Shown: positions 42,656-64,000, numbered from the stretch's first letter. The stretch is 64,000 nt of DNA from Hyaloraphidium curvatum SAG 235-1 (GCA_025558095.1 JAIVFI010000022.1:642475-706474), one strand, 5' to 3'. Notes: generated by a model not told the origin, from the letters alone. Numbers and translations: made by a program.

Positions 42656-43175
42656 CGCCCCCACCCAAAAGAAGGCGCCGCCCTCGGCGCCACGAAATCG
42701 AAGATCCTCCGCAGAGTGACGTCATGCTTGCAGTAGAAGATGTTGAAGGCCGAGGTGGAGACAACAGATGTTGGAGAGTGTAGGGCCGAAGGGTGGCTTA
42801 GGCGTCCTCAAAGTCGACGTCGGCGCCCGCCTCGTCGTCGCTCGGCGGCGGGGCGCGGAGCCGGCGGGTAAAGCCGAGAGCGAAGGCGGCATGCACGGCT
42901 GAGCCGTCCGCGGCCTAGGGGGTGTAGACCGGGTGCGGGCATGGTCGACTTGTAGGGCGCAGCCGGGATGTGTTGTACAGGGCGGCCAAGAGGCCGTCGT
43001 CCTGCGAGACGATGGAGGAGATCTGAACACGCATTTTCAGTCCGGGTATCACAAGTTGGCGTTCGAGGGGGTCGAGGATAGGCTCGAGGTAGTACGTCGG
43101 GTTTGAGTCAGTGAAAGCCGGGGATCGGAGCACAGAGATGGAAATGCTGTGACCGGATAGACGTCGTTGGTGTTA

Positions 43176-44570
43176 CTAGCGACGCCGAGTCCGCATGCGC
43201 CTGGGGAGACCCGTCGGGAGCTGGAGACCAACGCGATCGGCATAGGCGCGGACGATCCCTATGGCGCCGTGCAACATGTCCAGAGGGAGCTTGGTCGTAC
43301 GAGCGAAGCCCCGCCACTTGACCTCGAACTTGAGTCCGTGACCCTGGCCCTCGTGGCCGACGATGTCCTCGACGGTGTACTCCTGCTCGTTCCCAAGCGC
43401 GTTCTCGACCTCGATTTCCTCTTCGAACTCGTTCACCGGTTCCGAGAGATCGAGCTCTTCACCGGCGGCGAGCTCCGGGGCGCGTGCGTTCCACGAGCGC
43501 GCGTTGAAGGTGGCCGACTCCCAAGGCTTGTAGCGCGCCAGCCGGTCCACATGCACAGTGGTGACGTGGTCGGTCTCGTAGACGTGTCTACACTTCCAGG
43601 TGAGCTCGGTGTGGCCTGACTCCTCGATGCGGTAGGGCCCAAGATAACGAGAGACGAACTTGCCCGGCTCGCCCTTGCGCGGTCGTTCTGGTCCCCAGAT
43701 GAGCACGAGGTCGCCGGGGCGGAAGGTAATCGGAAGCCGGGTAGCGTTGGCCTTGGCGTTCCGAGTCTCCGCCGCTGCGGCCATCTTCTCGGCCACCAGG
43801 TCGTAGGCCGCACGAAGCTGCGCCACGAGCTCCACGACGTAGGTCCGCCGGCGCTCATCCTCTGTCTTCTTGTCCTCCTCGTCGCTGGCCCGCAGGTGCA
43901 CTGGCTCGCGAATCTCGGTCTCGTCGTAAAGTAGGTCGAGCGGAATACGAGCATCCCGACCATGCATCAGAAAGAACGGAGTTTCGCCGGTCGTCGCGTG
44001 GATGGAGGTCCGGAAGGCAAAGATGACCCCCACGATGTCCTCGTCCCATGTCTGGTAGTTCTTGGAGACCGCTGCGCTCAGGGCGTCGATGATCCACCGG
44101 TTCGGGCGCTCCGCGAGGGAAGCCCTGGGATGCCCAACCGTGACCAGGCCCCGGTTGATGCCGAGTAGCTTGAGCAGGTACTCCATGTAATGGTTGTCCA
44201 GGTTCGAGGCGTTGTCGTGGTGAATCCGCTTCGGAAGACCGTGCTCGAGAATCCATCGCGTATAGAGCAGCTTCGCCGTCGTCGGCCCAGAGAGGTCCGG
44301 AGTCGGATACGCCGCGACCCATTTAGTGAACGGATCGTAGACGACGAGAAGGTACTTGTTGTCGCGGGGCGTGGCCGGATTGATCTCGCCGATGTAGTCG
44401 ATGTAGATGTCCTCGTTGGGACCTGTGAGAGGAACCGATTTCAGTAAGCCCTGGTTCGATACCGAAGGCATCTTCCGGGTCATGCATGTTAGGCAGGCTC
44501 GCGTCCAGCGGCGAACGTCGTGCGCCATGCCGACCCAATATACGCGGCGCCGCAGATTGCTGTACGCCCG
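43176..44570 (-). CDS. Gypsy integrase with GPY/F motif and chromodomain (5'-truncated pol)
   Basis: YW.GM..DV...CLTC, IYIDYIG, IHHDNA, LAERPNR (DDE), TTGETPF, YLGPYRI, EYTVEDIVGH...VKWRGF. Confidence 0.92.
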   Translation of the reverse strand, partial: RAYSNLRRRVYWVGMAHDVRRWTRACLTCMTRKMPSVSNQGLLKSVPLTGPNEDIYIDYIGEINPATPRDNKYLLVVYDPFTKWVAAYPTPDLSGPTTAKLLYTRWILEHGLPKRIHHDNASNLDNHYMEYLLKLLGINRGLVTVGHPRASLAERPNRWIIDALSAAVSKNYQTWDEDIVGVIFAFRTSIHATTGETPFFLMHGRDARIPLDLLYDETEIREPVHLRASDEEDKKTEDERRRTYVVELVAQLRAAYDLVAEKMAAAAETRNAKANATRLPITFRPGDLVLIWGPERPRKGEPGKFVSRYLGPYRIEESGHTELTWKCRHVYETDHVTTVHVDRLARYKPWESATFNARSWNARAPELAAGEELDLSEPVNEFEEEIEVENALGNEQEYTVEDIVGHEGQGHGLKFEVKWRGFARTTKLPLDMLHGAIGIVRAYADRVGLQLPTGLPRRMRTRRR

Positions 44571-44825
44571 CCCTATGAGAAATTTCCATGGGAAAGCCCT
44601 GGGAAACAAATGGGAAAACCCGTCCCGCATGGGACTTGCATGGGAAAAGTGCTTGGACATGGGAAATCACATGGGCTGGCATGGGAATATTCCATGGGGA
44701 GCCTAACCCCTAAGTCCGGAGAATGGGATTGGCCATGGGAATAGTATGTACCAGGCCGTCCAGACCCAGGTGGTTAGGGCTTGGAAGCACAGGACATGGG
44801 CTGGACATGGGACGCCTCATGGGAT
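44571..44825 (+). repeat. Left terminal and subterminal CATGGG repeats
   Basis: More than 10 (C)ATGGG units, many 10-13 nt apart. Confidence 0.85.
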
Positions 44826-45122
44826 CCCTGAGCGACAGTGCACGAACTCGAAGAGTATCGCCTTGTTCATGACGTTCACTCACTGGCATTACCATCCTAG
44901 AGGGGCCGCAGGCTTCAGATGGATGCGCATTCAACCCGTTCGCCATCTCATTGACATCCGTTTTGAACTCGTTTGAAATCTGTTTCATATCCCTTTTTAG
45001 TCCGTTTTCTATCCGCTCGGGCATCCTTGCCCGTCTGCATGGATCCGCTCGTCCGATCGCAAGGCGGCGATCAGCCGAGGTCCGAACCGTTTCTCGGGTC
45101 CCGGATCTTGCCCACCGTGACC

Positions 45123-46199
45123 ATGTCGGTACGCGCTCTTCGGAGCTGCCCACCGGAGGTTCTGAAGGAAATCGCGCGTTTCCTGGACCCTAATGCGCGA
45201 GTCGCGCTCGCGAGCACGGGCAAGGAGATCCGCGCCGCGGTTTTGGACGTGGCCTTGCGGAGCGTCCGACCCCCAAGCTCGCGCACAGCTGCCGACTACT
45301 TCGATTCGGTGGTGCACGAAGGCACGGAGGAACTTATTCATGTGGTCACGAGGCACTTGACACTGGATCCCCAAGTTCCTTTTGGCAACGACCCCGCCGC
45401 CCTTCACCCTGAGCTTCAGTTCCGCAAGATAGCCCTGCCGCACCTCCACAGCCTCGCCATCGGCCTTAATCCCTCATTTCGCGCGCGAGAGCTGCGCCTT
45501 CTCCTCACAAGGCACGACCCCGCGGAGCACCTAAGGCAGCTCACCCTCACCAACGTCGACCTCGCCTTCCTTCCGTCCCTCGGGATGTTGGAAGTGTTTG
45601 TCTCCCGCTTGTCGTACCTGGAGATTGGCGTAACCGGGGGCGCTAAAGTCCTGAAAGGGGTTCTGGGATGCGTTGAGAAGGCGCTCTTCCACGGTCTCGG
45701 GTCGTGGGGTCTCCAAACATCGGAGAGAGAGCTTGCTTGTGAAATGCCCACTGAAGTGGCGCGTCGCTTGACGACGCTGAAGGCCGGGCCGCGCGTTTTC
45801 AAGCAGGTCTGCAACGCTTGTGGCGATTCGGGGACGGAGCTTCGGAGGCTCGCACTTTCGGGGATCTCGGGCTGCCGGAAGCTACTACGGGTGCAGAAAC
45901 ACGTGTGGTCGCTCGCGTTGCCGACCATGGAGTCTGACAACTACGCGAGGTTTACGCTTCCCAGGAACGTGGAGTACGTGGAGATCCAGACAATAATCGT
46001 GTCATGCCGCAGTCCCATGCACGAGATTCCGGACAGCCACGTGCTTCCTGGCATTATGTCTTTGCGGAAGCTCAAGCGCGTGGAGGTGTTAGGGTTCGCG
46101 GTCAAGACGCTATCCGACCGAGCCTTGAAGCAGCGTGACCTCGAAACTCAGTGGTGGCAGGTGACTCTTCCGGCGCGTTTGCGGAATCGCACTGTTTGA
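45123..46199 (+). CDS. F-box/LRR-like protein (transposon cargo)
   Basis: LRSCPPEVLKEIARFLDPNARVALASTGKEIR; LxxLxL repeats; C-terminal ETQWW. Confidence 0.75.
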   Translation: MSVRALRSCPPEVLKEIARFLDPNARVALASTGKEIRAAVLDVALRSVRPPSSRTAADYFDSVVHEGTEELIHVVTRHLTLDPQVPFGNDPAALHPELQFRKIALPHLHSLAIGLNPSFRARELRLLLTRHDPAEHLRQLTLTNVDLAFLPSLGMLEVFVSRLSYLEIGVTGGAKVLKGVLGCVEKALFHGLGSWGLQTSERELACEMPTEVARRLTTLKAGPRVFKQVCNACGDSGTELRRLALSGISGCRKLLRVQKHVWSLALPTMESDNYARFTLPRNVEYVEIQTIIVSCRSPMHEIPDSHVLPGIMSLRKLKRVEVLGFAVKTLSDRALKQRDLETQWWQVTLPARLRNRTV

Positions 46200-46407
46200 A
46201 GTTGTCGGCATGTGATTGGGTGCAACGTAGTGTTTTCCAAGCGCAGTTGTGATAGAAAGCGAACATGTGCGGATCGCGAAACAGAATCTTTCCGGATCGC
46301 ATACAGACAACAAGGTCGACAACGAACAGAAACCCTCAGGAAGTCATGCAGATCAATAGTGTGACACAAACGATAGCTCGCCATTCGTTCCGACATCTGG
46401 CCGACAC

Positions 46408-47661
46408 ATGAAAGAGTGTAATCATGGGCTTCAGTGGACTCACAACTGTGCGGGACGGGTCGGCGCAGTTTTGGAAAAAACACAAACACCTCCCATGCCC
46501 ATGCAGAGCCCCAGGGAAACAGCGACCATGGCAAAGACGCTGAACAGTTCAACTGAGCGCTCACGAGTGCTGCGGGCACGGCGGGCCGAGGAGCGCCGCC
46601 AGGTGCTGGAAAAGAAGCGCCTTCAGCAGCGCGCCCGCCGCGTGGTCGCACGGGGCATCTCGCCGCCCGTGGTCTCGGCCGACGGGACTGCCAGCGACAC
46701 GGAAAATGGGGCTTCGACGGACACGCAGACGCCGGAGGCCTGGGATGGCCATCGAGCGTCTCCGGCCCACCAATTGCCCCGTTGCGCCCGCGCTCCTGGT
46801 GGCCGGGACCCGCGCGCTGTGCTGCAGGGACCTGCGGACGACCCCCGCCTGGTTGCGTTGCCTGCTGTCAACGAAGCCGGAGGCATCGGATTCGGACTTT
46901 ACGTCGCCTGTCCGTTGTGCCCAATGGCGCACTTCGACAGCTCACCGACGGCCACGTGGCGCACTAGTGCCGCCGAGGCGCAGCTGATCTTGCAGCGGTC
47001 CCTTTGTGGGCGGTCTGCCGCAGGCACCGCGTTCCGCAAGGGCGACGTGCTGGGCACCTACAAAGGAACCACGTGTGCGAAGAGCTCATGCGGGGACTAT
47101 GTTCTTTTCATTCAAGCTTTGGGATTTTCGGTTGACGGGGCCAATCGAGGTTCCATCCTGCGCTTCGCCAATTATGCACAGGACCATCAGAAGCGCAATG
47201 CGGTGTTTTTGGGCAAGCCGGTCAAGGTGGAGAACCTTTGGGGGGCCCGAGTGGTCGCCTCGCGCAACATTTCCTACCATGACGAGGTTCTGCTTAACTA
47301 TGCGTCGCCCGGTTTCATTGGGAACTCCATGGTCGCGCGGCTGGAACACAAACTTGACGAGAAGCCCACGCCGTGCAGGTTGCCGACACCGGTGGTGAAG
47401 GTACACCGAGTCCGGGACCCTGGTGACGGGTTCGGCCTGGAGCTCAACGTCACGCGTCAGAGCGCGTACGAAGGATGGGCACGCAGTGGACGGCGCACCC
47501 GCAAACCGAAGCGGATCTGGATCCGCGAGAGCGAGGTTCCGGAGTCCGACGCGGAATCGCGAAGAGTGATCTCCGGCTTTCTGAAGGGGCACCGGCCCAA
47601 GCAGCCGACTCGCGCAACATCCGCGAGGTTGTTGGGGAAGGCGAAGAAGATCGATGTATAG
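46408..47661 (+). CDS. SET-domain protein with possible degenerate chromo-like C-terminus (cargo)
   Basis: GIGFGLY/AGTAFRKGDVLGTYKG, VDGANRGSILRFANY, NAVF, VVASRNISYHDEVLLNY; probable in-frame intron. Confidence 0.8.
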   Translation: MKECNHGLQWTHNCAGRVGAVLEKTQTPPMPMQSPRETATMAKTLNSSTERSRVLRARRAEERRQVLEKKRLQQRARRVVARGISPPVVSADGTASDTENGASTDTQTPEAWDGHRASPAHQLPRCARAPGGRDPRAVLQGPADDPRLVALPAVNEAGGIGFGLYVACPLCPMAHFDSSPTATWRTSAAEAQLILQRSLCGRSAAGTAFRKGDVLGTYKGTTCAKSSCGDYVLFIQALGFSVDGANRGSILRFANYAQDHQKRNAVFLGKPVKVENLWGARVVASRNISYHDEVLLNYASPGFIGNSMVARLEHKLDEKPTPCRLPTPVVKVHRVRDPGDGFGLELNVTRQSAYEGWARSGRRTRKPKRIWIRESEVPESDAESRRVISGFLKGHRPKQPTRATSARLLGKAKKIDV

Positions 47662-47867
47662 GTTCTTCTTCCTAAAGTCTGCTTGCCTTCCGCATGCAGT
47701 CCGCTTTTTGTCCGCATCAACTCTGCATCACATCTACTTGGCGTTAGGTCGCCGGCGTCCAAACTAACCACCTCTCTCTGCACGTGCCTTTGGAGGTGTC
47801 TCTTAGAGACCCGTGGAGGTTCCAAAGAACCGATTCGGAAGGCGAGGGCGACGCAAAGTACGAATTG

Positions 47868-49839
47868 TTAAGAAAACATTTCGCCGGTCTCCGTAATGCC
47901 CAGCCAGCACCTAAGGTGCCCCATCCGTGCTTGCTCGTCGTCATATGTGCCGCCTGCCACCCACTGGTCGAGGGCTATGTAATGATCAAGGCCGGCCTCC
48001 AAAGGGAACGAGAACACCTCTCTCGCGATGCCGTAGAGCTCCGGGAATCGCTCGCGGTTTTCCTGTGACAAAGGGTGCGTCAATCGGCCTTCCCAGGCTG
48101 CCCTCTGGCGAAACACTACGCGTCCTACCTTCCAATAGCCGGGGATGTCGATCAGTTCCTCGCGGTTGGCACTGACCGACTCGTTGATGTAGACCACGGC
48201 CTCGCTCTTGCCGTGGTTCTGCCGACGAGCCTGTACCGCGAAATCCTCGATATCTTGGAGATGGTTATGCCTAAGTGAAGCGCGCGGCTTGGTGTACGGA
48301 CGCGCGGTGGCGACGGGAGCGGCGTCGTTTGTGATCGCGCTTGCTGCTGAAATGAGCATTTCCATGGCAGTCTTCTTGTACGATTCCAGTTGCGACCGGA
48401 TGACGGCATGCTTTAAGGCGTCTTGGACGGCGGCAATCTTTCGGGACAGCCACGTGAGCCTCATGTTCGGGTTAAGCACTGCCCAGGACCGCAAGATCAA
48501 TAGGAGCCCTCGAATGGACCAGTCGCGACAACGCTGCTGGAAGCTCACCCATACAAAGGAGGACATAACGCTCGTTCGATTCAATTGCAGACTTGAGTTC
48601 CTTGTCTGCCGTACTTAGGAGCTCGGCAGCTTGCTCCAGCTGCAGTTTTGGGAGGTCTGCAAGGCCGCGACTCTTGGTCCGGTCAATCAGATCCACTTGG
48701 GCATCATGCAATAGGACTCGTAAGTCAATCAGTGCCGCTGCAATGAGCCCGCGTTGATGTAGGCGTCGACCGTCGTCCCTCGGAGTGTCCCGCAGATCGT
48801 AATCTTGCACAGCTTCCCAAGCGTTGACGAGCACTTGCCTTGGCGAGCAAGTGGTGAAACGAAAATCGAGTCAGCAAGCATCGACATGCACGCATACCGC
48901 GCGCCCTCACGCACCGGAGATGAAACATAGTCGCTGGTGGCGGTAGGGAGGAGGTCGGGTAGGGCATGGCCTTTTGCGCTTTACGGACGAGCTCCCGCAC
49001 CCGGAAGAGCCACGGCTTGATTCCGTAGCCGAGAAGCTCGAAGCGGTCATGCTCGAGGCGTGGGGTCTGCTGACCACTGAGGAAGCCAGGGGGGATCGCC
49101 ATTGTAATTGTTACGATCTGCACGCGGGTCGTTTGTCGGTGACACAATGCGGGAGTTGCCCCAGCAGGGCGCGTGTCCTACTTCGTTCTCAAGCAGCGCC
49201 ACGTGCCTGGCCAGGGGCTCGTCCACAATCATGCTCTTGATCATGTCGAACGAAACGCTCCCGTTGCGAGCGATTCGCTCGCCAACGACAGCCTGAAAAA
49301 GCTTCCAATCCTCGGACAAAAACTCGACCACGAGCTTGAGAGACGTTGGGTCTTTGACGTCCATTGCCGTACCGTCATCGGCGACGAACGAGACCAGGAG
49401 ATGGCCGGAGCAGGTCTTGAGCAGGCTGGCCACGCGCCGATGAACCTCGCTGACCAGATCCGCCACAGTCGGCAGAGGAACGTCCTGGCAGACAGCGCGG
49501 ATGAGGCCACGCACGGCTCCATTGTCCGGCGCGACATCCGACAGCCGGCGCCCCATCGACACGGCCAGCGAGAGCAGCGCCTGTTGCACATTGTTGTCAG
49601 ACTTTCGAATGGAACGGGATGAGAATCGGCCGCACTTTAACGAGATCCTCCTTGGTTCCGGCGGCGCGGGACTGTGCAATACCGCAGGGTTTCGGGGATG
49701 CGACAGCCGTGTCGCCGCTGCTGCCTGTGTGTGCTTCCTCGCCGAATTCGTCGACCTGACTCGTTTGTCGCGTTGGGCCAAGGGGGGGCGCCGCAGCCGC
49801 GCCGCCTTCTTCGCCGGCACCGTCCACCGAAGTAATCAT
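47868..49839 (-). CDS. Hypothetical multi-exon cargo protein
   Basis: Chain of minus-strand ORFs with GT-AG candidates between two 11-bp arrays; no recognisable domain. Confidence 0.45.
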
Positions 49840-50054
49840 TGAACCGTTTTGTTGGGTGGCGAAGAGACCTACACTGCTGGTCGATGGGCTCCAAGGGAGT
49901 GAGGCGATCAGTGAAAACAGGGTTAGGAGTGAAAGCGGACTACATGCAGATCGCAAACAGACACAAACTAGGACAAAACGGACTACAGTCAGACGGATAG
50001 CGGAGCAACGTAGCTGCGATATAGATTCCGCCATAGGCGTTCGGCAGCACATCG

Positions 50055-53000
50055 TCACACCGAATCCGGCTTCTTGATCCGCTTTTTGAGTTCCCTAGTC
50101 TTTTGTTTCCTCGCCGCACCCAGAACCTTCTCCCTTGCACGAGCTTCTGGACTCACATAATCCCGGGGATCAATCATCCAGTTGAGGTCGAGAATGTAAT
50201 GCCATTCCCTGGCCATCGGGTCCGAACCCCAGTCGGTGGGCTCCAACGCGGTCGAAGCCACGGTCGGGTCACCTACCCAGCGCCTCAAAAGCCCGACGAG
50301 GCGGTCCAGGCAGGTGACAGGCACTAACATATGTTCCATGTGAGAGCCGTCTCTCTGAAACTGGAAGTTTTTGATTCCCCACCCCGCCGCCGCGTCGAAA
50401 CCGGCCGCCTTGATGACCGACATCCACGCAAAGGCATGCTCCTCGCCCTGCACTTCGTGCACGATGTAGTAATGCACGAAACCAAAACGTTCGACTCCAG
50501 GATGATCCGGATCGTCGAACGCAGCCATGTGGTTGAGGCGCCGTGTCCGGTTGATTGCCTGGACCCGGTGAGACACCAAAGGGAGCCGTCTCGCGGGCTT
50601 CCCCGAAGACATCACCGAGCCAAAAGTCGCCTTGCCCGGTAGTTCAAGCCTGGCAAACTGGCGAAAGGCGCGGGAGATGTCGTCTTTGGCAAGATACCCC
50701 CCCCAGGTGCCACCCTTTCGGTAGTATCGGAGGAGCGCTTTGATCTGAACCTTTTTGAGGCCCTACCGCCGTGTGCGGGGACGTTGTTTGGATGCTTAGT
50801 GCCCCAGAAAACGGTTATTGCAAGCAACCAACCTCTTCTTCCCGGTGTACCCGGTACGGCCATCGCAATTCGAAGCCTGTGCCGGTGTAGATCTTTCCGA
50901 ACTGTTTCCGCTGGAGCTTTCGCTGGTCGATGAAGGCTGTCTCCATTCGAGGGTCCATCTTCACCAGCTCAAGCCGAGTTTGGCCCTGAACTTTGCCGGC
51001 CATGTCTGCTATGGGCGCCCGGCGGTTGTCGACCAATTGTTGCAAAACGTTGATCTTTCGCTCTGTTTGGAATTGGGACGTTGCCCACGGAGCCCCGTTA
51101 CAATCGACCCGCTCCGCAAAATGCAGGAACGTGTGCAGATTGTACGTGCAGACGTCACCCATGACCTCCTCGGATCGATCATAGCACGTCCTGAGCAGCA
51201 GAGCGAGGTGGGGGCGGCGGGTGCGTGTTACTGGTAATACTAAATGCTGAGAATCACGCACCCACCCCTCGCGCCAGAGAACGTATCTTAAGCAAGCCTC
51301 GTGCAAAAGACCGGTATCCACGCGGTGCTTCGCCGTGAGCTGTCCAATTCGAACAAGCCACGCGATGCCCTCAAAGTCCTCGGGGAGCAGGCGATCATGG
51401 AGGAGGGGAACATAGTACAGTTTCAAGAGGGTGAACCACTCCTCCGTCTTGTACCCATTCTCGTGGACCAAGCTGCGGGGAACGCGCCCGAAACAGCTTG
51501 GGAGGAGAAGCGCCGAAGCCACGATATCATGGTCCATCTCCTCGATCTGACGAGGTGTCAGACGGCATCTGGCGGATGGAGTGTCCCTGGAGTTGACGGC
51601 CGTGTTGTACTCCTGCGTCGTCATCCCTTGGCAGTGTTGCGAGGAATCCGTGATGTGGGTGGGTTTGACGTTGATCTTGTGCTTCTTGGCCATCTCCTTC
51701 GCGAACTTTTTCCATTCTTTCTTCCCCATCTTCGGCTTCAGTGTTCTCTGGTAAAGGCGTTGGACGTTGCCAGCAACCTGGTGCATCCGGTCGTACGCGA
51801 GGCAGTGCGGAAGCCGCATCGCGCCGAACGCAGTGCGCGTGACCGGGAGACCCTGATTCGAGAAGCAAATGTCGAACACGGAGCGACGCATGATACCTGC
51901 GGTACCAGCAGCAGCAGGAGGCGAGCGCCAAGTCAGGTACGCGAGCTTATCTCGCCGCCGCCGGTGCACGCACCCGTTTCCTTCTGGATCTTGTCAATTG
52001 CCGCTTTGGGAGCCTCAAGTCGGGCGTACGTCGAAGCATACGTCTCGACAGTGTACATCGGAAGGTTCTCCGGGTCGTAGTCGATCCGGCCTCCACGCTT
52101 CCCGTAGGCCTCACTCAGCTTCACGTTTGCCACGTCCGGCAGGTGAAGGCACGGGCACCGCCCGTACCCAACCAATCCACAGAACATACAAGATACGGTC
52201 GCGTTGTGTCCCCGAGACCCTGCCATCTTCTTGATGTGCGGCGCATCTGCTTGCACCATGTACGCGTGGCCGCGCATAGTAAAAGTGACCCCGTCGGACG
52301 CATCCTTGACCCCGGGCACACCTTCTGCCAGCTGCTGCAGCTCCTCCCGCAGCGGGCGGATGACCGACTCGTGATCCCACTTCATCCCACCGGGGAGGAG
52401 CATGCAGAGGTGCTGACCACCATCAACAGTTCGGATGCCGGGCGGGAGGTTGGATATCTTGGCAAGCACGGGTTCGAACGTGTTCTTCGCCCTGTTATTG
52501 TGGTCGGATCAGTCCATCCACACGGATTGGATGGTAGGATGAACTCACTGCTTGAACATTTCGGCGGGATCACCGCTGATCTCGAGCCAGACGGTGCGGG
52601 GATCGAGATTTCCAGAGTCGTCATTCGCGAATCCTTCGTCGATCAGTCGCTGGAACTCCGTTCCGTCAAATACGTCCCCAACGACACGGCCTGCTGCTGG
52701 GCGCTGCTGTGACGGCTGTGACTGCGGCTGCGGCTGCAGTTTCTGCTTTCCCTTCCCTTGTTTTCCCCCCTGACGCGCATGTTCCTTCTCTCGCTCGGCA
52801 GCAGCCTGCTGCTGTTCGATCTCGTGCTGCAACCGCCCCAACATCTCGGTGAAATAGCCGTACCACCATTTGAGTTCTTTAGCCCGGCCCAAGTGGCCGA
52901 ACATGGCTCGCAGGACGGGGATTATGGGGAAGTAGAAAGCGTACTTGTGTGCTGTACCAGTGTCTCCACGGCGGTCGGAAGGATGCCTGAGGTATCGGGC

Positions 53001-54047
53001 AGCTTTGCAGATGGGGCAGGCAACGGCCTTGGCCAAGTCCATGCCACTCCTGCTGTCAATGCCATGGAAAAGTACGCATCCGTTGCGGCAAACATGATGT
53101 CCTGTGGGTAGCGCAATAAGGAGCCGATCACGCACGGTAGAGAGAGTGGTCTCACTCTCGTAAGCATAACCCCCTGAGAGTGTGGCAAGCCGCACCCCGG
53201 CCATGTAGCGGGACACCGATGCATCACCGAGAAGGTTGGTCATGAAGTCGGTGTAATGGTCTTCTGTCCCTTTGTATTCCACGTGAAGCCGTTCCGCGGT
53301 GAGAAATCGTATTACGTGCTCGTCGGACTTGAAGCTCGGGTGAGCCGTCTGGATGGAACCGCTGCCCTGGAAAGAGAAGAAAAAGTCCTTGGCATTGTCC
53401 GCCGCTGCTTCCTCCTCCCTTTTCCGGTGTTCCATCCGCCGCCGATGCTCCTCTTCGTTTGCCTTCCTCCAGTCCTCCTGGGATTCCTCAATTCCTTGAA
53501 GAAAGGCCTCATCATCGCTTCCGTAGTCCGATTCTGCGAAATCCGACTCGTGGAAATCGTTCAGTTCCGCGTCGGGTTCCGTGTCTGAGTCTGATTCCAG
53601 TGCAGAGTCGGATTCCGATTCATGTGCAGATCCGAAGGCAGAGTCCGAAGCAGACGTCTCGGATCCACTATCCGCAAAGTCGGAACCAGCCGTCTCGTTT
53701 GTCTGGCCCGCAGGCGTGGTCACGTCCGGAGCCTTTTGCGCCGGATCATGGATGGGAGAAGGGTCGGCGACCTCGCCGGGGGGCGACGGTGCAAAGTCAT
53801 CAGCAGATGCACCCCACGTAGAGGCTGTGAGGACTCTTCGCTCGGCGGAATCGTTGGTATAGTGTTTCCGTGAAAACCACGCTTTCGCCGAGAAGTGCGT
53901 CGCCAGGAGATCACCAAGGGCCGGATCCCCGTCCGCGAGGGAGCCCCACTCGTGGCACACGCCTCTCTCGTTCACGTGTTTCTTGATGGTTCTATTCAGA
54001 TGGGCATGCGTGCCACGACAGCCTGAACAAGGGCACCGGCTTCTCAT
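50055..54047 (-). CDS. CACTA/EnSpm Tnp2-family transposase, multi-exon, apparently intact
   Basis: N-terminal CPCSGC..H; HVCRNGCVLF..CPICKAARY; YFPIIPVL; DVFDG; ISGD; NLPP; QADAP; GHNATVSCMFC; YDRMH; YKTEEW; NLHTFLHF; GAPWATSQFQTER. Confidence 0.92.
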
Positions 54048-54281
54048 CGGTATCAGCGCACAGAAAAGGGGTCGGATTGTGTGCCTCGAGAAAACTAGCG
54101 CCGGCCGACGAGAATGTGAAACCTAGCCTCAAACTGGTAGGTTATGGGATTGGGAAGCAAAGCGGATGGCAAGTAGATAGTGAGCAGATCAAAAGCGGAC
54201 TCCATGCGGACACAAAACGGTATCGCAGCGGATCGCGTCTTTGCGGGGCTCGCCAAACAGACTCTGGTTCTCTGGAAAACT

Positions 54282-55085
54282 ATGTCATCCGAAACCTCGT
54301 CACCGGCGGCGGTCGGCCCGGCCGAGCGTCGCCGGCTCCGCCGCGAAGCCGCTGGCAAGACCGCGGGCGCGCGTTCCGGCGACGAAGAGGACGCGGAACC
54401 GCCGTCGAAACGGCGGCTCAGGAAAAAGGAGACGGCTCCCGACGACACGCAGACGGACCTTGAGCTGGCGTTGTTTCCCGACTTGCGCCGAACGTCTGCT
54501 GCGCTTGGTGGCAACGCCCCCAAGGAGGCCGCCCGACCGGCAAGCAACGGCAGCCGCGGCTCGAAAGCGGCAGTTCCAGGACCGGCCGGGCCGCGGCGCT
54601 CTGATCAACGCGGCCGGGCGGTGGCCACGGTGAGCCGATGGCTGGATCTGGCAGCGGTCGACGACGACGCGGGACCCGGCGCGTCCCCGGGTGATTCGGC
54701 CTACGAAGACACCCACGAACTGGACACATCCTCCCCCGGAGAGGTGGGCTCCCCGTGGCGGAACTCGCCCTCGTTCCACCGCGAGCTGGATGCTCGCAGG
54801 GCAAAGGAGGAGGCGAAAAGAACGCGGGACGATCAACGGCAGGCGCGTTGGGGGCGCGGAAGCCGCTCCACACGAGGCGCGGGAGCCTTTGGCACCGGCG
54901 CCCCGCCGTACCTCCCCTCTTCCGATGGAATCGATCGGATCTCATCTTCTGCGGCAAGCAGCTTCGATTGAAAGGGAACCCGCTGCGCCGGGCACGCCAG
55001 CCCTCGTTGGAGCGCAGCACCCGCATCGACGGACAGGTTGGCGAGCCACGCACGGTGGCCATCGGCATAGGCAAAGCAAGCTAAG
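54282..55085 (+). CDS. Hypothetical basic/disordered protein, divergent from the transposase
   Basis: ORF from ATG 54282 with NLS-like PPSKRRLRKK; 3' end uncertain. Confidence 0.4.
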
Positions 55086-55318
55086 CTACATTGTTGGTTA
55101 TACTCCCTGTACAAATAGGATTACCCAACAAGTTTCGTCGGACGTGTTCTGGGCGCCATCTGCTGTGATTCCACGTCGCGTTGCCCCGCATCGGTTCGGT
55201 AAACGCTGCCACCAGAAGCCGGACGACCATGGTAGCCAACCGAAAGCATCTCCCGGATTGGGCACACCCTCCTGCGAATCAGCAAGACGATTGCAGAGGT
55301 GCCAAGGGGGAGCCTACC

Positions 55319-56221
55319 TCAGATGATGTCCAACACTATGTCCTTTACCAAATGGTGCCTGTACTTGGGAACTTCGCTCTGCCTGATCCCAGCGCCTTTG
55401 TACCATGCCTCCAGTCTCTTTTGAACGATTGCTGCATTCCACGGACCCCAAGTGTGGGGCCCTCCTCCTTCCAAGGTGAGCGATGCGAACAGCTCGACGT
55501 GGGCCATAGCAAACACCATGCATGCAGACCCGTCGAGCTGCTTGGCGTCGCCGACGTCCAAATCAATGTCCAAGTACGATTCCTCCTTCGCCACCTCGTA
55601 GCCCTCGATGCGGAGGATCGAGTGCACCACCTGTTCGACGCCTCTGGCATCCCGAAGTACCCCTGCCCGTGAACCAGACCGCGAGAGGAGATCCAAAGCG
55701 AACGTGAAGGTGCCCACTCGTCCCGTGCCGGCAGTTGGGTCGAAGAAGTGGGCCATCGACGCGACAAAGATCCAATGGGACCTTTCCTTGACAAAGAGCG
55801 GCGCGAGGAACATCCAGCAGCGTCGTGAAATGGCGAAGCGCGTTTCGCTGCGCACATGCTTCTCTTCGCGGCCGACGCCGTGCTCGTATCCCTTCGCGCG
55901 CATGTTCTGGCGGACGTATCCCTCGACGCCCACCTTCCGCCACGCTTGGTAAGCGTTGCCGGGGTTCCCCGCGGAGATGTCGACGGCAAAACGGGTCAAC
56001 TGCCCGTCGAGAAACACCACTCCGGGAAAGTACTGGGCCCTGCGCTCGAGCCACCGTTGGTAGGCTTCGTCGCCTAGCCAGGTCTCGGGCTCGAGGGGCC
56101 GCACGAGCTCCGAAACCCCAGGCTCCCGGGTTACCTTCGTGAAAACGAATCCAGTCACTGCGCCCCTTTCGTCGGCACCTAGTCCCCGATCCCAGGGTTC
56201 GTTCCACCGGAAGTTCGCCAT
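55319..56221 (-). CDS. Ulp1/SENP-like C48 cysteine protease (cargo)
   Basis: LEPETWLGDE, APLF...SHWIFV, ALDLL, KQLDGSACMVF give the His-Asp-Cys triad and the oxyanion Gln. Confidence 0.8.
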   Translation of the reverse strand: MANFRWNEPWDRGLGADERGAVTGFVFTKVTREPGVSELVRPLEPETWLGDEAYQRWLERRAQYFPGVVFLDGQLTRFAVDISAGNPGNAYQAWRKVGVEGYVRQNMRAKGYEHGVGREEKHVRSETRFAISRRCWMFLAPLFVKERSHWIFVASMAHFFDPTAGTGRVGTFTFALDLLSRSGSRAGVLRDARGVEQVVHSILRIEGYEVAKEESYLDIDLDVGDAKQLDGSACMVFAMAHVELFASLTLEGGGPHTWGPWNAAIVQKRLEAWYKGAGIRQSEVPKYRHHLVKDIVLDII

Positions 56222-56376
56222 GGCCCCAGATGGTACGTCTCGAGAACCCGACCTTAAGAATTTGATGTGTCGTTCGTTCGCTGCTCATCCCTTTTCGTTC
56301 CCTTTCCATTCTGCTTCTTTCCCGCAACCGGCTTCTTTCCCGCAACCGGCTTCTTCCTCCGCTCGCGCTCGACGCG

Positions 56377-58513
56377 ATGCCCCCCAAGGGTGCCGCGCCC
56401 GCGCCGGAAGCAACGACGCCGCCGCAGCGGCGCCCGAGGCCGCGGGTCCGGGACGTGGTCACCCCGGGTGCCCGGGTGCCTTCTCCTGCAGCGGGTACGC
56501 GCGCGAGACTCGCCTCCGGCTGCCACTGCAGTCTTTGAACATGCGTCTATACGGGTGCGCAGACCAACCGGCCCCCACGTCGCCCAGTCGAAAAGCCAAG
56601 TCCAAGCCGCATGCGAACGCGTCGCTCGCGGTCAAGGCGAACGCGCCCAAGCAGAAGAAGGCCAAGTCCAATCCTCGGGAGGGTAAGCCACGGCCAACAA
56701 CGGCGTTGCGCGCCGTCTAACGCCTTGTCACGACCGGCAGAGGACCCGTCAGGCGGGCCGCGCGAGCCGACGGAGCCGGCCAACGCGGTCAAGAAGACGA
56801 AGGGCAAGGGCAAGCAGAGAGAGGGTTAGCCACGCCCAGCAGCAACGGCGTCGCGCGCTGTCTAACGCCTTTGTCACGACCGGCAGAGGAGCCCTCCGGC
56901 GGCCAGGACGACCCGAAGGATCAGGCCGTCCCGGCGGACGAACCGGCGAACGCGCTCGACCTCTTAAAAGCGACGCTGGCGAGGCAGCTCGCTAGCAAAG
57001 AAGTTGAACCCTGCGACGTTCCCGAAGCGGCCGGCGGCGGCCCGCACCCGGACATCGTTGGCCTGTTCGACTACGTGGGTGTCTCCGAGATTCCCCAACG
57101 AAGCTAGGCCACCACTGATTTCACTGCTAGCTCGCCGAAATCACTACAGACTTCGACACCAAGGCTTACGCGGCATGGATGAAGACCGAGTTCAAGCACA
57201 AGCGAGTCCGGTTGGGCAGTCTGGATGAACGGAGGGCGAAAGCCATCTCGCAGGTGGGCTTCAGTAAGCGGTGCCTTCCGGCGTCGGCCAATGACCTTCC
57301 CTTGCAGCACATCGACAACTACAAGAAGGAGCGCAGCAGCAAAGTCATCGAAGAGCTGGACCTGCTATACAAGGCCGCTGATAGTCGCGAGATAGTCAGC
57401 AGAAAGTATGGGGGCCAGCGGTATTTCAAGGCGCCGGTGGTCCGTGCGGGCGGGCCGGTGCGCCCCATCGTTATGGACTTTTTCAAGGATGTGGGTGTTC
57501 CACGCACGGACCCTTGGACCGGAGCCGGGCCATGATTGACTCCGCTGCCAGCTCCTCGAGCTCACGGACGATGCCGAGATGGCCTCTTGGCTGCAAGACG
57601 TCGTGAGCAAGTTGGCGTCGGACGAGACGGTGGTTTCGGGGGTGGACGACGACCAGCAGAAGGCCATCTTCGAGGTGGTTTTCTGGGCAGCGTCCACCGC
57701 CACGGGCGGCCACTGACTCCGTTTCCTTGCAGCACATCAAGGTCTACAAGAAGCGGCTGTTGGATGACGACCGGCAGCTCCCCGGCCCCCCGCCGGAGGA
57801 GGACTCCGAGGCGCGCGCCGCGACGCCCCCGGTCGTCGCCCCGCAGCCGCCGCCGGAGGACGACGGGCAGCTCCCCGACCCCCCGCCGGAGGGGGACTCC
57901 GAGGACGAGGATGAAGAGCTCCGCGGGCCTGCTGTGGCAGAGCCGCGGAAGCGGGGCCGTGGCAAAGGAGGGCGGGGGAGGGGACGGGCCGTTGAGACTA
58001 AAGCCAAGAAGCCGCGTGTCCGGGGTAGGCTTACCTCGAACGGCGCCGAGGACGGACGCATCTAACAGCATTTACCGTCCGGTGGACAGATGTGTCGTCT
58101 GCCGGCAGCGCCCCGAAGCCCCAAGGCGACGAGCACGCGCACGATCCGGAGCCGGCGTCCAAGAAGGACAAGGCCAAGGGCAAGGACAAGCGGACGCACA
58201 AGCAGCCCGAGGATGAACACCAAGACGACGAGTACGCGCCCTTTCCGGGGCCGGCATCCAAGAAGCACAAGGCCAAGGGCAAGAACTTGAGATTCCTCGA
58301 ACTCAACCCGACCGTAAGTCCTCGTCCCTCCGGCACGCTTTGGCAAGACCGCTCATGCAGGAGACGTTCTCCGTTGTAGACGGACCAGCTGCAAACCCAC
58401 GTGCAGTCGCTTGATATCCCGTACCGGCTCCTCCTCAAACCGCAGATCAATGCATCGCCGCTCGGGTTCTTCGCCTTGAAGAAGGCGACGCCCGACAAGC
58501 CCGACGCCAAGGA

Positions 58514-58548
<35 letters not shown>

Positions 58549-59638
58549 ACGGGGACGGGGGCAACGGGGACGGGGTCGGGGATGGAGATGGGGTCGAGGA
58601 GCACGTTTGCTTCGTGGTCGGCTGCCAGACGCGGTACAGTGGAACCAGCCAGTTCCACGCCCACCTCCTGTCGGCACACGGGATCAGCTCACGGGACATT
58701 CTCCGGTCGTGGAGGGTGAACTTCGGCGTTGTCGAGCGCACCGGAAGGGTTGGTTGGGACACTTGCTATCGATCTGGCGTTCTTGACCAGTCGCGTGGCG
58801 CATCAGGAGAGCGCTGAGAAACTGACCAAGGAACAGAAGATGTCCCTGAGTGGTGCTATAAGGGCTGTCACGCCGTCGCAGGCATGTCTCCGTGGGCCGC
58901 GCATCACGACCCGGCCCGCTTGACTGACAACTTGGCGCCCGAAGGCGGAGCTCCTGACGGCGGCGCTCGACATCACCGATCACGTTGCTCTGGACGCGAG
59001 CAGCAAGGTCGTGTACACCATCGACAAGTTCGACAAGCCCGTGGACCCGCCGTTGCCATCCAAGGTCGTTGTCCGGCTACCGAACATCGAGGAGACGGAC
59101 GGGCGAGTCTTCTTTCGCCTCGTGCTGACGCACCATATGACCATCGAAAAGGTTATGGGTTTCCTGCTTTGCACCGGCGGACCTCCGCATTGACGCGAAT
59201 ACTTCCAGATCGTCGAGATCAACGAGACCGAGGTCGCTTTGATTGGGATGGTCACATACCCTGGCGCACTTCTACATCTCGCGAACGAATTCGTCGCCAA
59301 GTACGACACCCGCGAGCGCCCGCCCGACGCGACCCCGGTGCAGGTAGAGGTTGGGCTCGACTACGTGTTCAACGATTCATTCGCGACCCACTGCTTCCGA
59401 GTACGTCATAGCGCGTTGGTGCCTCACCCGGCAAGTTTCCTAACCCCTTTCCCAGGTCACAATTACCGCCGAGACAAGCTGGCTATTCCCGGGCTTCGAA
59501 GTCGACCTCGAGGAGCCGGCGTTCCGGGTGGTAAATGCCAAAGGGCTCAGTATTGTTAGCTTTCGCGGGCGACGGAAAGCAACGAGGAATGAGGGACGAT
59601 CGCTTGCGCGTGCGATCAACTTGTACGAGGATGATTAG
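56377..59638 (+). CDS. Multi-exon cargo protein with a C2H2 zinc finger and internal repeats
   Basis: CFVVGCQTRYSGTSQFHAHLLSAH (C-x4-C-x12-H-x4-H) near 58608-58679; many short introns; exon chain approximate. Confidence 0.55.
58523..58592 (+). repeat. (GACGGG)n coding microsatellite (Asp-Gly)
   Basis: Visible directly. Confidence 0.85.
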
Positions 59639-59933
59639 GTGTCTTTTCGTACCGTGCAATGGCAAGTAGACGGTCTTTCCTTTGTCCGACCGAAACAGAA
59701 CTAATGTGGACTGAAAGCAGATGCAAAGTGGACCAGTGGCAGCTAGCAAACGGACCTGGCCCCCGAATCGTTTATCCAAAGCGAGATGAACGTAGACATA
59801 CTTGATTGGCCGGAAAGGACGCCTTTCACCTCCCGCACTTCCTCTTACGGATCCCGAATTCGGCGAATTGGCGCGCGGCGCTTTGGCGTGAGTCGCGCAA
59901 ACCGTCCGCGCGACCACACATCCATATCCCGGA

Positions 59934-62900
59934 ATGACCGCCGCTGGATCACCGTCCTCCGGCGCGCCGTCGGCAGTCAGCGGCGCGCCGGCCCATGCGC
60001 CGCTGATCCAGCCCTGCTTGGCGCTTCTCAAGGCAATCCGTCTCGGGGGCACCAAACAGGCCGCACACGCCGCTAAGCTTGCAGAGCTCACCCGAGGCTC
60101 GGAGCTCGCGCTCGGTGGTCAAAGCGCATTTGCACTGTCGTTTTGCGAGGTCTTCCGGGCTCTTGATAGCGAGCTCCAGACGGTCCTCGCGGATCTCGCG
60201 GAGTGCTGCGGTGCCCTCGTCCGGGAGGACCCACGGGTGCCGGCAGACCCGCTTGTGGGCAAGATCCAGCTCCTGCAGTCAGCTTTTGATTCAGAAGACT
60301 GGCCTGCGGCCTTCTCTGCCACCGAGGATCTCGTCACAAACAAAGAGCTCTTCGCTTTGGGGCAGCATGCTGCTGCGCTTGCCGCCTTCGACGAGGTATT
60401 CGCTCTGCTGGGCCAGCACGCATCCGAACAAGCGCTCGATATTATGGTCAAGCTTGTGGACGTTTGGGAGTACCGGAATCGCGCCGAGTCCTCAGAAAGC
60501 CTGGGGAAACCCTCCTCTGAGTCGGATTCCGTGGCCGGCTCCCAAGACCCGCTCCCCTTCACCTCACCGCGCTACAGCGGCGCCGCAACCATGTATCCGT
60601 TCGCTAGACAGGCCGTGGTCACCGCCCAAACGGTGGAGGACGCACCCTCGAGCATGGAGCCGCAGTGTGAGACCCCGCGTGTTTTCGCTGTCACAACTGC
60701 TGACGTCGCTGTCCCCGTATCAGTCACCGCCGAGGGAATCATCTGGCCCGACTTCTTCACGCTCCGGAAAGCGAGTGCAAAGGAGGACACGGAGAAGCAG
60801 GGGGAAACGCTGGTCATGATCCAAGACATCTTTGCAGCTTTCCATCCGACACCCGACTTGGCCGAGCTGAAGGGCTACATCGCCAAGCCGCGGTACAAGA
60901 CGCGATCTGCGCCCAAAGACGGCAGAGAGAACGGCACTGATACTGGGTATGTGCCGTGCAAGGACCAATGGATTGCAATTGGAGCGTGGATGTTTTTCGC
61001 GTGCCTCGACGAGGACGAGAAGGCAGCATTCGTCTTCAACATCAAGGCTGTGATGGTGCGTTATGCGATGGAGGCTGCTCGGTCTTTGCGCAGTCTTCTG
61101 ACTGATGCCACCGCAGCAGGTTTCGCGGGACGAAATCGGAAACCTCTTCAATGACTTGCGGGACGAAGACGGCAATCTTCCACAAATGAAACACATGAAG
61201 ATCAGCGGCGCGGGGCCGAAGGTTGTTCTCTACAAGAACCGCTTCCAGACCTACGTCGGAAACGTACGTGAACCCAGTGCAGGCGGACTTGGCCATATGG
61301 ATGCGGACTGATCATTCGATCGTTCTCGCTGCAGATGATCAAGAGCTTCCCGTATTTGGCATTCTACGAGGACGCCTGGATCCTGGCAGTGATCTACTCG
61401 ACGCAACGCAGGGGCGTGGCGAAGGCAAGTGCGTGACTTCGCTGTGACCGCAGAGCCTGTGTGCACCTCTCACCAATTGCTTCCCAGTCAAGGACCAGGA
61501 GAAGGACCAGCAGCAGGATCCTGCTGTGGACGGCGACCCACAGCCGTCGGCTTTGGATACGCCTTTTCCGCCCCCGCGCCTGGACAGCGACGAGCAGATG
61601 CGCCTCAAGAAGATCGAGAAGAAGAAATGTGGGTCTTTGCTTGCAGCGAGCACGCGATCGGCACGCACCGTCCGTTCTCATTGCTCGTCATTAGCCAAAG
61701 CCGCACCCCAGCCCGCAACTGTCGCCATGCCCGCAGCCGTTGCCAAGCCCGCAGCCGTTGCCAAGCCCGCACCCGTGCGCAAGCACGCAACCGCGCCCAA
61801 GTCCACCGCAGCAGCAGCCGTGCCCAAGCCCGCAGCAGCCGCACCCAAGTCCAGGGAGGCCAGTGCAGCCGTGCCCAAGCCCGCAGCAGGCGCCCCCAAG
61901 TCCACCGCAGCCGTGCCCAAGCCCGCAGTAGCCGCGCCCAAGTCCACTGCAGCAGTGCCCAAGCCCGCAGCAGCCGCGTCCAAGCCCGCAACCGCGCCCA
62001 AGGCCACCGCAGCCGCACCAAAGCCAGCAGCCACGCCGGAACCCGCAGCAGCCGCCAAGCCCCCGCTCCTCCCGCAGAAGCTGCCCGCACAGAAGCCGAT
62101 CTCACAGAAGCCGGTGAAGGTGGCGTCTGGTTCGGGGATCTCCGCAGCCGGCGCCCCACCACTGCCCCGCGAGCCCGACTCAGACATCCGCGAAGTCGAC
62201 GCCGCTGAAGTGGCGCCGGCCAAGGTCTACCAGACTACGAAAACCAAGCCTCATCCGCCAACGGAGGATCCATTGTACTGGGAGGCTTGCGCTGGCATCT
62301 CGCGCGAGGAGTTCGTTTCGAACTTCATCGACGGAGGTAGGTGCCGCCACCGCACCAATCCCGATAAATGACACCGCGTTCCACGCAAGCAGACGATCTC
62401 GACGTAAACCATTTCCGGGTTTCGGCCGGCAGAATCGTTTACCTGGCGAAATCCGGCAAGCTGGATTCTCTGTCTGGGACTGTGGCATCGGGCGCGTCGT
62501 CGTCGTCGACATTTGATTCCATCCAACCCCTCGCGCAGCTCATCATCAAGCTGTTTCCTTGGGTCCTGGCGAACAGCCCGCGGAGTACCGACGACGTTAT
62601 TCGACTGATTCGCGGGGGACCTTCTCCGAGCCCTCCACGCAGCTCCTCGCCGCGAGCATTGGTATCTCAGGCCGCATCGGATGACCCGGTCGATGGTCCA
62701 TCACCAGCTACCCGTGCGTCTGCGGCCGATCGCAAGTTCTTGACTGATGGCGCCTCTTCCGTTCTCTAGAGCGCTCGGACAGCAGCAGCAACGATTCGCC
62801 CGACGAGAGCGAGGAATCCTCTGCCGAAGACTCCGAATCCGTGCTCGGCGCAAACTTGGGCGAGTCACATGGCCCACGAGTACGCCGTCGTGGAGCTACC

Positions 62901-63262
62901 GTTGACGCTGGTAGGTTGCAAACTCGGGTGCTGGTCAAGTTGCTGACAACCTCCCCTCTCCTTCCGGCCAAGCTACAACCAAGAAGCCGCGCAATTCCAA
63001 GAAGACCGGCTCCACCGCGAACAAGAAGCCGGCGGTCAAGTCGACGGCAGGCAAGTCGATGGCAGACAAGGGAGGACGCGGGAAGGAGAACGCTGATTCA
63101 CGCGGAAACAGTGCGTACGCTGGCTACGCGCGACTGGACGCTGATTGCCACCTTCCAACAGGCCAGCAGAACAGCATCACCGACTACTTTTCCCAGCCAG
63201 ACCCTCCTGAGCGTCTCCCGCAGCGTTCGAACCGGTTCAATGGAACCTTTTCGGGGCTCTAG
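59934..63262 (+). CDS. Multi-exon accessory protein with PKPAAA repeats and a C-terminal PIP-box
   Basis: ORFs 59934-61154, 61105-61311, 61526-62371, 62368-62769 and 63059-63262 can be linked by GT-AG introns; QNSITDYF near the end; could be two genes. Confidence 0.5.
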
Positions 63263-63569
63263 GGACAACCACAGGCACGTGCGGCGGGAGCATGGGTAGG
63301 TAGGCTTGGACGCGTACTGCCCGAGCAAAGGTGCATTGACAGCGGATCGCATGCGGATCTGAAGCAGACGACATGCGGATCTGAAGCAGACAACATACGG
63401 ATCTGAAGCAGACATCAAGTGGATACTTAGCAGAGGAATTACGGGAAGTGAAACGGAGAACGATCAGTAGTCTGGCAGATGTCTATTGGGAGTGCTGGCG
63501 GGGTGTCAAAAGTCATGGGGCCAAATAAAAGGACCGGGCAAACGTTTTCGGCGCCCGATGCCGACCATT

Positions 63570-63862
63570 GTTCCCATGTCAAGACCAATGTCAGAAAAGG
63601 CTTTCCCATGTCGCACACCGCGGTTCCCATGTTTAACCCATGTGGGATACCGCCTTCCCATGCCACGATCCCATGTTGCACACAGGCATCCCATGCGATG
63701 CACAAAGACTTTCCCATTTTGGGCCCCATTCTCGGGCCCTGGTCCTTTCCCCCACCAAGGAAATTCCCATGTTCCCTATCTCAGATTCCCATGTTGACCG
63801 ACCTCGGACCACTGGAATTCCCATGTCGGGCCCCATGTCCGGCCCATGTCGGACCCCATGTT
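63570..63862 (-). repeat. Right subterminal CCCATG repeats (inverted relative to the left array)
   Basis: More than 12 CCCATG units. Confidence 0.85.
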
Positions 63863-63865
63863 CAC

Positions 63866-64000
63866 TTAGGTTAGGTTAGGTTAGGTTAGGTTAGGTTAGG
63901 TTAGGTTAGGTTAGGTTAGGTTAGGTTAGGTTAGGTTAGGTTAGGTTAGGTTAGGTTAGGTTAGGTTAGGTTAGGTTAGGTTAGGTTAGGTTAGGTTAGG
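63866..64000 (+). repeat. Telomere (TTAGG)27
   Basis: Perfect pentamer array to the window end, G-rich strand running 5'->3' outward. Confidence 0.95.

Follow-up and report, generated by a model that had tools for sequence, protein, structure and literature searches.

Some transposable elements regulate themselves through a protein of their own that reads dense clusters of a short DNA motif. To our knowledge, this has been shown experimentally only in plants, for VANC, TnpA, and the AtMu1 transposase. Here we describe a DNA transposon of the aquatic, early-diverging fungus Hyaloraphidium curvatum SAG 235-1 whose non-coding stretches hold seven arrays of one short motif in strict 11-bp register. 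The element occupies positions 44571-63865 of a 64,000-bp stretch of the genome assembly (GCA_025558095.1, JAIVFI010000022.1:642475-706474; contig C22:642475-706474), termed the "window", and coordinates are counted from the first base of that stretch.

The maize TnpA motif is 12 bp long. The Ac transposase, of the hAT type, binds AAACGG repeats that are irregularly spaced and exclusively subterminal. The parC site of plasmid R1 is made up of ten 11-bp repeats, to which ParR binds. The target of VANC21 is a 9-bp motif that is arrayed in one orientation and at high density in the introns, intergenic DNA, and terminal non-coding DNA of VANDAL21 elements only (PMC5735166). In the Spm element, TnpA requires dense clusters of a 10-bp terminal motif, and it activates and demethylates its own family; its DNA-binding domain is derived from a transposase, and TnpA-like proteins appear to be limited to flowering plants, while in fungi the DNA-binding domain is fused to the transposase (bioRxiv 10.64898/2026.08.24.746577).

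A preliminary description of the window had placed seven motif arrays with an 11-nt period in it, and the motif is present in register at all seven. The arrays were scored on the 7-mer W-R-Y-R-G-A-Y, with at least five of seven positions matching and the best register taken for each array, which gives 3-10 in-phase units per array:

44923-45061, minus strand: A1, 10 of 13 slots in 11-bp phase at five or more of seven positions; the motif reads to the left end
46258-46353, plus strand: A2, two 3-unit sub-arrays with a 1-bp phase slip between them
47677-47738, minus strand: A3, 6 consecutive in-phase units
49934-50005, plus strand: A4, 3 + 3 in-phase units
54161-54233, plus strand: A5, 7 in-phase units
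59694-59755, plus strand: A6, 6 in-phase units
63341-63446, plus strand: A7, 10 in-phase units, including a 22-bp x 3 near-perfect repeat; the motif reads to the right end

On the plus strand of the element, pairs of RYRGAY occur 15, 13, 10, and 7 times at distances of 11, 22, 33, and 44 bp, and the corresponding counts in the 42-kb host part of the window are 0, 0, 1, and 0. Seventeen in-phase pairs were observed in the element against a mean of 0.46 and a maximum of 4 in 1000 dinucleotide-preserving shuffles, and 11 in-phase triples against none; the period-11 signal proposed beforehand withstands the comparison with shuffled controls. Per-position information over 53 units resolves the array unit into eight constrained positions (A-W-G-C-R-G-A-Y) and three uninformative ones, which agrees with the earlier statement that core and spacing are conserved while the other bases vary. 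The first A of the motif, which lies outside the 7-mer used for selecting units, is A in 40 of the 53. Conservation of the core beside freely varying spacers is in keeping with protein-binding sites rather than neutral satellites. In a plain minisatellite the units would be alike over their full length, spacers included, and here 3 of every 11 bp are uninformative; Tandem Repeats Finder reports only A7 (22 bp x 3, 95%) and a weak trace of A1. The preliminary description had further put the sites on one helical face. With B-DNA at ~10.5 bp per turn, this stands as an approximation but not strictly, as 11.0 bp per site drifts by ~17 degrees per unit.

The whole 31.9-Mb assembly was searched for the phased motif. 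Three units in phase match 31 times, with 27 matches in the three copies of the element and 4 elsewhere, and the reversed-pattern control gives 5. Two units 11 bp apart match 86 times (34 in the three copies, 52 elsewhere), and two units 10 bp apart match 46 times (3 in the three copies, 43 elsewhere). Host pairs thus number 52 at 11 bp versus 43 at 10 bp, so host DNA has no preference for the 11-bp spacing, and the three-unit pattern finds no host locus with a comparable array anywhere in the genome. The phased arrays are confined to one transposon family, as had been proposed when none were seen in the host DNA of the window. In metagenomes, a five-unit pattern gives at least 120 matches, nearly all of them perfect 11-bp satellites, DnaA-box arrays included; as these are mostly perfect satellites, they were ruled out as relatives.

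That the arrays belong to a transposon, as supposed earlier, is evident from its copies. Three of these, on contigs C22 (the window), C24, and C26, share the left boundary at 44571 and have three different left flanks. The copy on C26 is complete, with terminal inverted repeats and a length of 19,402 bp, and the copy on C24 is cut by the contig end. The copies are 99.4-99.6% identical, so the element is young. The ends of the window copy are composed as follows:

44571-44582, plus strand: left 12-bp terminal inverted repeat CCCTATGAGAAA, the left boundary of the element
44588-44826, plus strand: left subterminal cluster of 13 RACATGGGA motifs, many of them 11-12 bp apart
63573-63865, minus strand: right subterminal RACATGGGA cluster, with 15 of 19 copies kept in the broken window copy
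63866-64000, plus strand: telomere repeat (TTAGG)27, which caps the broken element

The inverted repeat copy TTTCTCATAGGG closes the complete C26 copy. RACATGGGA occurs 13 times in the first 255 bp and 19 times in the last 360 bp of the element, in runs at 11-12 bp, and constitutes a second motif class, separate from that of the internal arrays. When the terminal motif (M-A-T-G-G-G-A) is set beside the array motif (M-A-W-G-C-R-G-A), the outer parts are alike and the latter has one extra middle base; this likeness may be fortuitous, or the DNA-binding domains behind the two motifs may be related and differ in half-site spacing.

On the basis of its transposase matches and distant kin, the carrier is assigned, at superfamily level only, to the DNA transposons of CMC (CACTA/EnSpm-Mirage) type. 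Its subterminal motifs are inverted between the two ends, as in other members of the group. Termini of the CMC superfamily are 5'-CACTA or 5'-CA..TG-3' (PMC12730594); those of the Hyaloraphidium element depart from both, being 5'-CCCTATGAG...CTCATAGGG-3', with CCCTA one base away from CACTA. A target-site duplication of 2-5 bp was sought in the C26 copy, the only one with both ends, whose flanks read CTC and CTG; judged by paralogous copies of the flanking retroelement, the sequence on the right does not continue that on the left. Within the element, no internal copies of the terminal repeat were found at up to two mismatches, by which an origin of the internal arrays through nested insertion was ruled out. 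The genome likewise holds no partial copies, solo blocks, or shorter derivatives that end at internal arrays, and no relatives beyond the three copies. Among 1.8 billion representative proteins, only the gene model from the same genome (P0001, described below) and very distant CMC transposases are related; a word-based search with P0001 returned only itself, and a metagenome protein scan returned nothing. One metagenome contig with a distant CMC transposase has tandem arrays of 10 bp x 10 and 10 bp x 3.8 immediately downstream of the transposase gene (L135:5428-5585), so short-period arrays beside CMC transposases are not unique to H. curvatum.

The copies differ in small ways. The two sub-arrays of A4 lie 21 bp apart in the window copy and 20 bp apart in the other two, and a 1-bp indel at 49965 distinguishes copies in this array. 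At 44935 and 63443 the window copy deviates from the array motif and the other two copies fit better, although these positions are too few for a call of decay; having lost its right end, the window copy is immobile. The C24 copy has 15 private single-base indels (equivalent to window 56471-59312), all within the last 10 kb of its contig. They were ruled out as frame-restoring changes, for they open no longer frame, and are probably assembly errors near the contig end.

Between its ends, the element holds the following coding regions, given as open reading frames (ORFs) or gene models:

45123-46199 (ATG at 45039 or 45123), plus strand: ORF with coding signal and a weak F-box-like N-terminus (Pfam F-box E=0.18, F-box_4 E=0.12, below cut-off)
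46408-47661, plus strand: ORF with a weak SET-domain-like region (Pfam SET E=0.19, 12.6 bits versus a cut-off of 22.4; profile positions 8-104 of 105)
47868-49820, minus strand: coding region on the downstream side of the transposase core; weak hAT-dimerization-like signature
50055-54047, minus strand: transposase gene of CMC/EnSpm type in several ORF pieces, with Transposase_21 and Transpos_assoc matches and an RNA contig at 50346-50488
ATG at 54282, plus strand: ORF next to A5
55319-56221, minus strand: ORF in which a His..Asp..Gln..Cys pattern like that of Ulp1/C48 proteases was seen by eye only; Pfam and PDB searches gave no match
56541-58817, plus strand: ab initio gene model with seven introns of 56-130 nt, from the codon-usage profile and exon chaining
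59934-61154, plus strand: orphan 406-aa ORF with no Pfam, PDB, or Atlas match; AlphaFold2 mean predicted local distance difference test score (pLDDT) of 39
61526-62371, plus strand: Ala/Pro/Lys-rich ORF with tandem peptide repeats; the count of its 42-bp unit varies between copies

The transposase ORFs match Transposase_21 with E=5.6e-5 and 22.9 bits, which is under the Pfam cut-off of 28.6, and Transpos_assoc with E=0.0027. Distant kin (P0013, P0020, and P0003) with Transposase_21, DUF1258, or DUF4218 align to two blocks of P0001. This NCBI model (DFJ74DRAFT_771040, 889 aa, hypothetical protein) joins the transposase core to the downstream ORFs over a 514-bp gap that holds A4 and leaves out a 500-aa N-terminal ORF. 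The downstream region, 47868-49820, is a gene of its own or else supplies the 3' exons of the transposase gene. Its 47868-48584 ORF matches Dimer_Tnp_hAT with E=0.14 in Pfam, and its look-alikes in the Atlas are hAT C-terminal families at 0.87-0.88; both signals are weak and below every threshold. In the Ala/Pro/Lys-rich ORF, the coding 21/42-bp repeat at 61865-62056 has one extra 42-bp unit in the C26 copy. VANC proteins have tandem peptide repeats in their variable parts, according to the VANC paper.

Contigs from one public run, compared with 44571-50570, lack introns, which identifies the run as RNA. They cover 47842-48289, 48374-48863, and 50346-50488 and reveal two introns, one on the minus strand (48062-48127, with GT..AG ends on that strand) and one on the plus strand (48720-48785, GTAAGT..AG). 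The element thus gives rise to spliced transcripts, and near 48-49 kb it does so from both strands. The contigs contradict the P0001 intron at 48522-48985. The contig at 48374-48863 is spliced on the plus strand, though the coding signal there is on the minus strand, and possibly represents a transcript of the element that is antisense or divergent.

All seven arrays lie in stretches without coding signal, as judged from profiles of codon usage and of GC content at third codon positions, so the earlier placement of the arrays outside genes holds, with A4 possibly intronic. A1, at a distance of 352-490 bp from the left end, is flanked by the left terminal cluster and, just downstream, by the F-box-like ORF. 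A2 ends 55 bp upstream of the ATG of the SET-like ORF (46408), and A3 is enclosed by two convergent ORFs, between their stops at 47661 and 47868. A4 lies in the 514-bp "intron" of P0001, or between two genes, and separates the transposase core from the downstream minus-strand coding region. A5 occupies a divergent spacer: the plus-strand ATG at 54282 is 49 bp away from it, and the minus-strand ATG of the transposase, at 54047, is 114 bp away. A6 ends 179 bp upstream of the ATG at 59934. A7 belongs to the terminal non-coding DNA on the right, at about 496-591 bp from the true end of the element. A1 and A7 are thus mirror-symmetric about the element, both reading outwards and each lying just internal to a terminal RACATGGGA cluster, while A2-A6 lie 1.7-9.6 kb from the nearer end. 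For five to six of the seven arrays a start codon is 33-180 bp away, with the array in either orientation.

Among the described systems, VANDAL21, of the Mutator superfamily, resembles the locus in that the motif is short (9 bp there, 8 bp here), arrayed in one orientation, dense, and family-specific (PMC5735166; PMC10398659). The arrays of both are partly built through tandem duplication. The comparison with VANC-bound motif arrays made in the preliminary description is therefore apt, as VANC21 motifs are arrayed in one orientation and at high density in non-coding DNA of their own family only (PMC5735166), and family-specific, one-orientation, dense, non-coding arrays are what is found in the Hyaloraphidium element. 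The two differ in that the plant element is a Mutator and this one a CMC element in an early-diverging fungus, and in the strict 11-bp register and constant unit number between copies seen here. Moreover, neither a VANC homolog nor a Mutator-type transposase was recognized: Pfam scans of the main ORFs named no VANC-associated or Mutator-like element (MULE) family, and the transposase is of CMC type.

En/Spm shares the transposase superfamily and has clusters of a ~10-12-bp cognate motif inverted at the two ends; in that system, the regulator turns on genes of its own element, and its action depends on a high density of motifs. However, TnpA clusters are restricted to the termini, whereas five of the arrays here (A2-A6) are internal and the termini carry another motif, and no Pfam match to a TnpA-like protein, or to a domain with two tri-helical helix-turn-helix motifs, was found in the element ORFs. 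Ac resembles the element in its many short direct repeats in subterminal regions; some array units read AAACGGAY, and weak hAT-dimerization-like signals occur in 47868-48584, but Ac motifs are irregular and only subterminal, and the hAT signals here are below every threshold. The head-to-tail 11-bp sites of R1 parC and of iterons, which are tiled cooperatively, offer a model for reading the strict 11-bp register, although these are prokaryotic partition systems and no homology is implied. The kind of system is a known one, and the present case would differ from those in plants in its early-diverging fungal host, its CMC transposase, the presence of arrays in most internal spacers in addition to those near the ends, and the combination of an exact 11-bp spacing with a separate terminal motif.

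From these comparisons, our leading but tentative reading is that the arrays are clusters of cognate sites for an element-encoded, sequence-specific DNA-binding regulator. The conserved core, the free spacers, the strict register, and the recurrence at seven loci of the element, with none in 32 Mb of host DNA, argue for selected, element-specific protein sites, and the maintenance of the register over 6-10 units counts for selection on core and spacing. The non-coding location beside gene starts in both orientations, the mirror placement of A1 and A7, the youth and transcription of the element, and the VANC21 and TnpA precedents also count in favor of this reading. The termini present RACATGGGA at 11-12 bp, as expected for transposase sites, which suggests that phased arrays are the element's way of presenting protein sites; because this terminal motif is a different one, the internal motif implies a second DNA-binding activity. 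We infer protein binding, the origin of the binder in the element, and the effect that binding would have. With A-W-G-C-R-G-A-Y filling 8 bp in every 11, monomers bound to the units would follow one another head to tail along the DNA and could bind cooperatively. Arrays near start codons could allow the element's own genes to be switched on, or protected from silencing, as one unit, and the outermost arrays, A1 and A7, next to the terminal clusters of transposase sites, would perhaps help to pair the ends. The logic would be that of TnpA on Spm/CACTA and of VANC on VANDAL elements.

Several observations weigh against this reading. No clear DNA-binding domain was recognized in the element ORFs by Pfam, PDB-sequence, or Atlas searches. 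Regular-expression searches of the element proteins for zinc-finger, Myb, and AT-hook patterns gave a single C2H2-like pattern, a canonical one at 58608-58679 in the last exon of the ab initio 56541-58817 model, whose exons were searched separately (FOXP-CC E=0.026); this finger is the only lead to a binder. Two AlphaFold2 models made without an alignment have pLDDT values of 39.0 and 39.5 and are unusable. Relatives in which motif and protein might covary were found neither in the genome itself nor among the representative proteins nor in the metagenome scan. The arrays had been described as marking the intergenic spacers, and they do occupy seven spacers or non-coding stretches, but the spacers at 56221-56540, 61154-61526, and 62371-62841 lack a phased array; the second of these holds four unphased motif matches. 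A3 is positioned downstream of both of the convergent ORFs that flank it. Of the RNA contigs in the 44571-50570 interval that was covered, none extends into A1-A4, and such contigs cannot show transcript starts. Lastly, the unit numbers are constant across the three copies, whereas VANC arrays are dynamic, though the copies are very young.

A more specific form of the regulator reading, possible but doubtful, is that an accessory protein tiles the arrays in most gene-start spacers and co-activates or shields a chromatin-directed cargo (the SET-like, F-box-like, and Ulp1-like ORFs). If true, it would be the first VANC/TnpA-like system outside plants and would run against the view that fungal Spm-type elements keep the DNA-binding function inside the transposase.

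The arrays might instead be promoter or enhancer modules composed of repeated sites for a host transcription factor, with no binder encoded by the element; the transposon would have multiplied the site of such a factor ahead of its genes and so gained strong expression. Their position 33-180 bp from start codons, in either orientation, is like that of upstream activating sequences, and A7 has recently grown by tandem duplication. The neighboring long terminal repeat (LTR)-like repeat also has an 11-bp x 7 array after a TATATA box, so phased arrays may be a widespread way of building promoters among the mobile elements of this genome. A comparable array, however, exists at no host locus, and pairs outside the element are equally frequent at 11 bp (52) and at 10 bp (43). 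A host factor that uses single sites is compatible with these data, and we consider host-factor modules somewhat unlikely as a whole.

It is unlikely that the arrays are cis-elements of transposition, serving in complex assembly or as a transpositional enhancer, and not in transcriptional control. In favor of such a role, A1 and A7 are mirror-symmetric and read outwards, immediately internal to the RACATGGGA clusters, with which they share a spacing of ~11 bp. Maize TnpA, which serves both regulation and transposition, is a precedent that counts in favor of this role. The preprint on TnpA covers the regulatory side (bioRxiv 10.64898/2026.08.24.746577). Five of the arrays, however, are 1.7-9.6 kb from the nearer end and thus too far for classical subterminal sites, and the element has neither internal terminal repeats nor shorter derivatives ending at internal arrays.

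Arrays that need no specific protein and work through intrinsic bending or the exclusion of nucleosomes, or that are neutral minisatellites, are improbable. T-tracts do occur in 11-bp phase within A1, and part of A7 is a plain 22-bp tandem repeat. By contrast, A- and T-tracts are missing from most units of A5, A6, and A7, intrinsic bending being judged here by eye. Neutral repeats would not hold eight positions while randomizing three, nor would they yield the same motif seven times within a single element and in no other part of the 32-Mb genome. The least supported proposal is that of junction marks, raised in the preliminary description, by which the arrays would show where exchangeable cargo cassettes join or recombine, and we judge it very improbable: the arrays do lie at gene boundaries, with (A1, A2) and (A3, A4) forming outward-facing pairs around gene blocks, but a comparison of cargo order finds the three copies strictly collinear, no block exists alone elsewhere in the genome, internal terminal repeats are missing, and Pfam scans recognized no recombinase in the element.

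The surroundings of the element are themselves mobile and terminal. The DNA transposon is inserted into part of an LTR retroelement. An rve/chromo integrase, at 43176-44660, was considered as a gene of the transposon, which would have made the latter Maverick-like or viral. This was ruled out, since the integrase belongs to a fragment of that separate retroelement, which is present in many copies, and the transposon starts at 44571. More than a dozen copies elsewhere in the genome match the retroelement fragment (window 43021-44570 and 42190-43020) with 100% identity over 1.55 kb, a sign of very recent retrotransposition. At 42500-42580, just 3' of the TATATA box in its LTR-like repeat, there is an 11-bp tandem array of ~7 units with a consensus near GCGAGTCACTT; the retroelement is thus a second mobile element with an array of 11-bp period in a likely control region.

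At the other side, the window copy of the transposon is broken at 63865/63866, with the last 67 bp of the element gone and (TTAGG)27 directly after. All 100 TTAGG matches listed, of 703, are near the high-coordinate end of contigs C1-C5 and in one orientation, which identifies TTAGG as the telomere repeat of H. curvatum. A chromosome end has therefore healed inside a mobile element.

A case of self-regulation in a fungus of a zoosporic lineage would carry the principle across kingdoms. The element is a compact system in which to test it: its arrays number seven, share one 8-bp motif and a strict 11-bp register, and come with about ten candidate proteins. The strict register gives a handle on cooperative DNA tiling by a eukaryotic regulator. 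If the binder is found, the motif and its protein could be used as an orthogonal targeting module. More broadly, the arrays bear on how large, cargo-carrying transposons keep many genes co-expressed.

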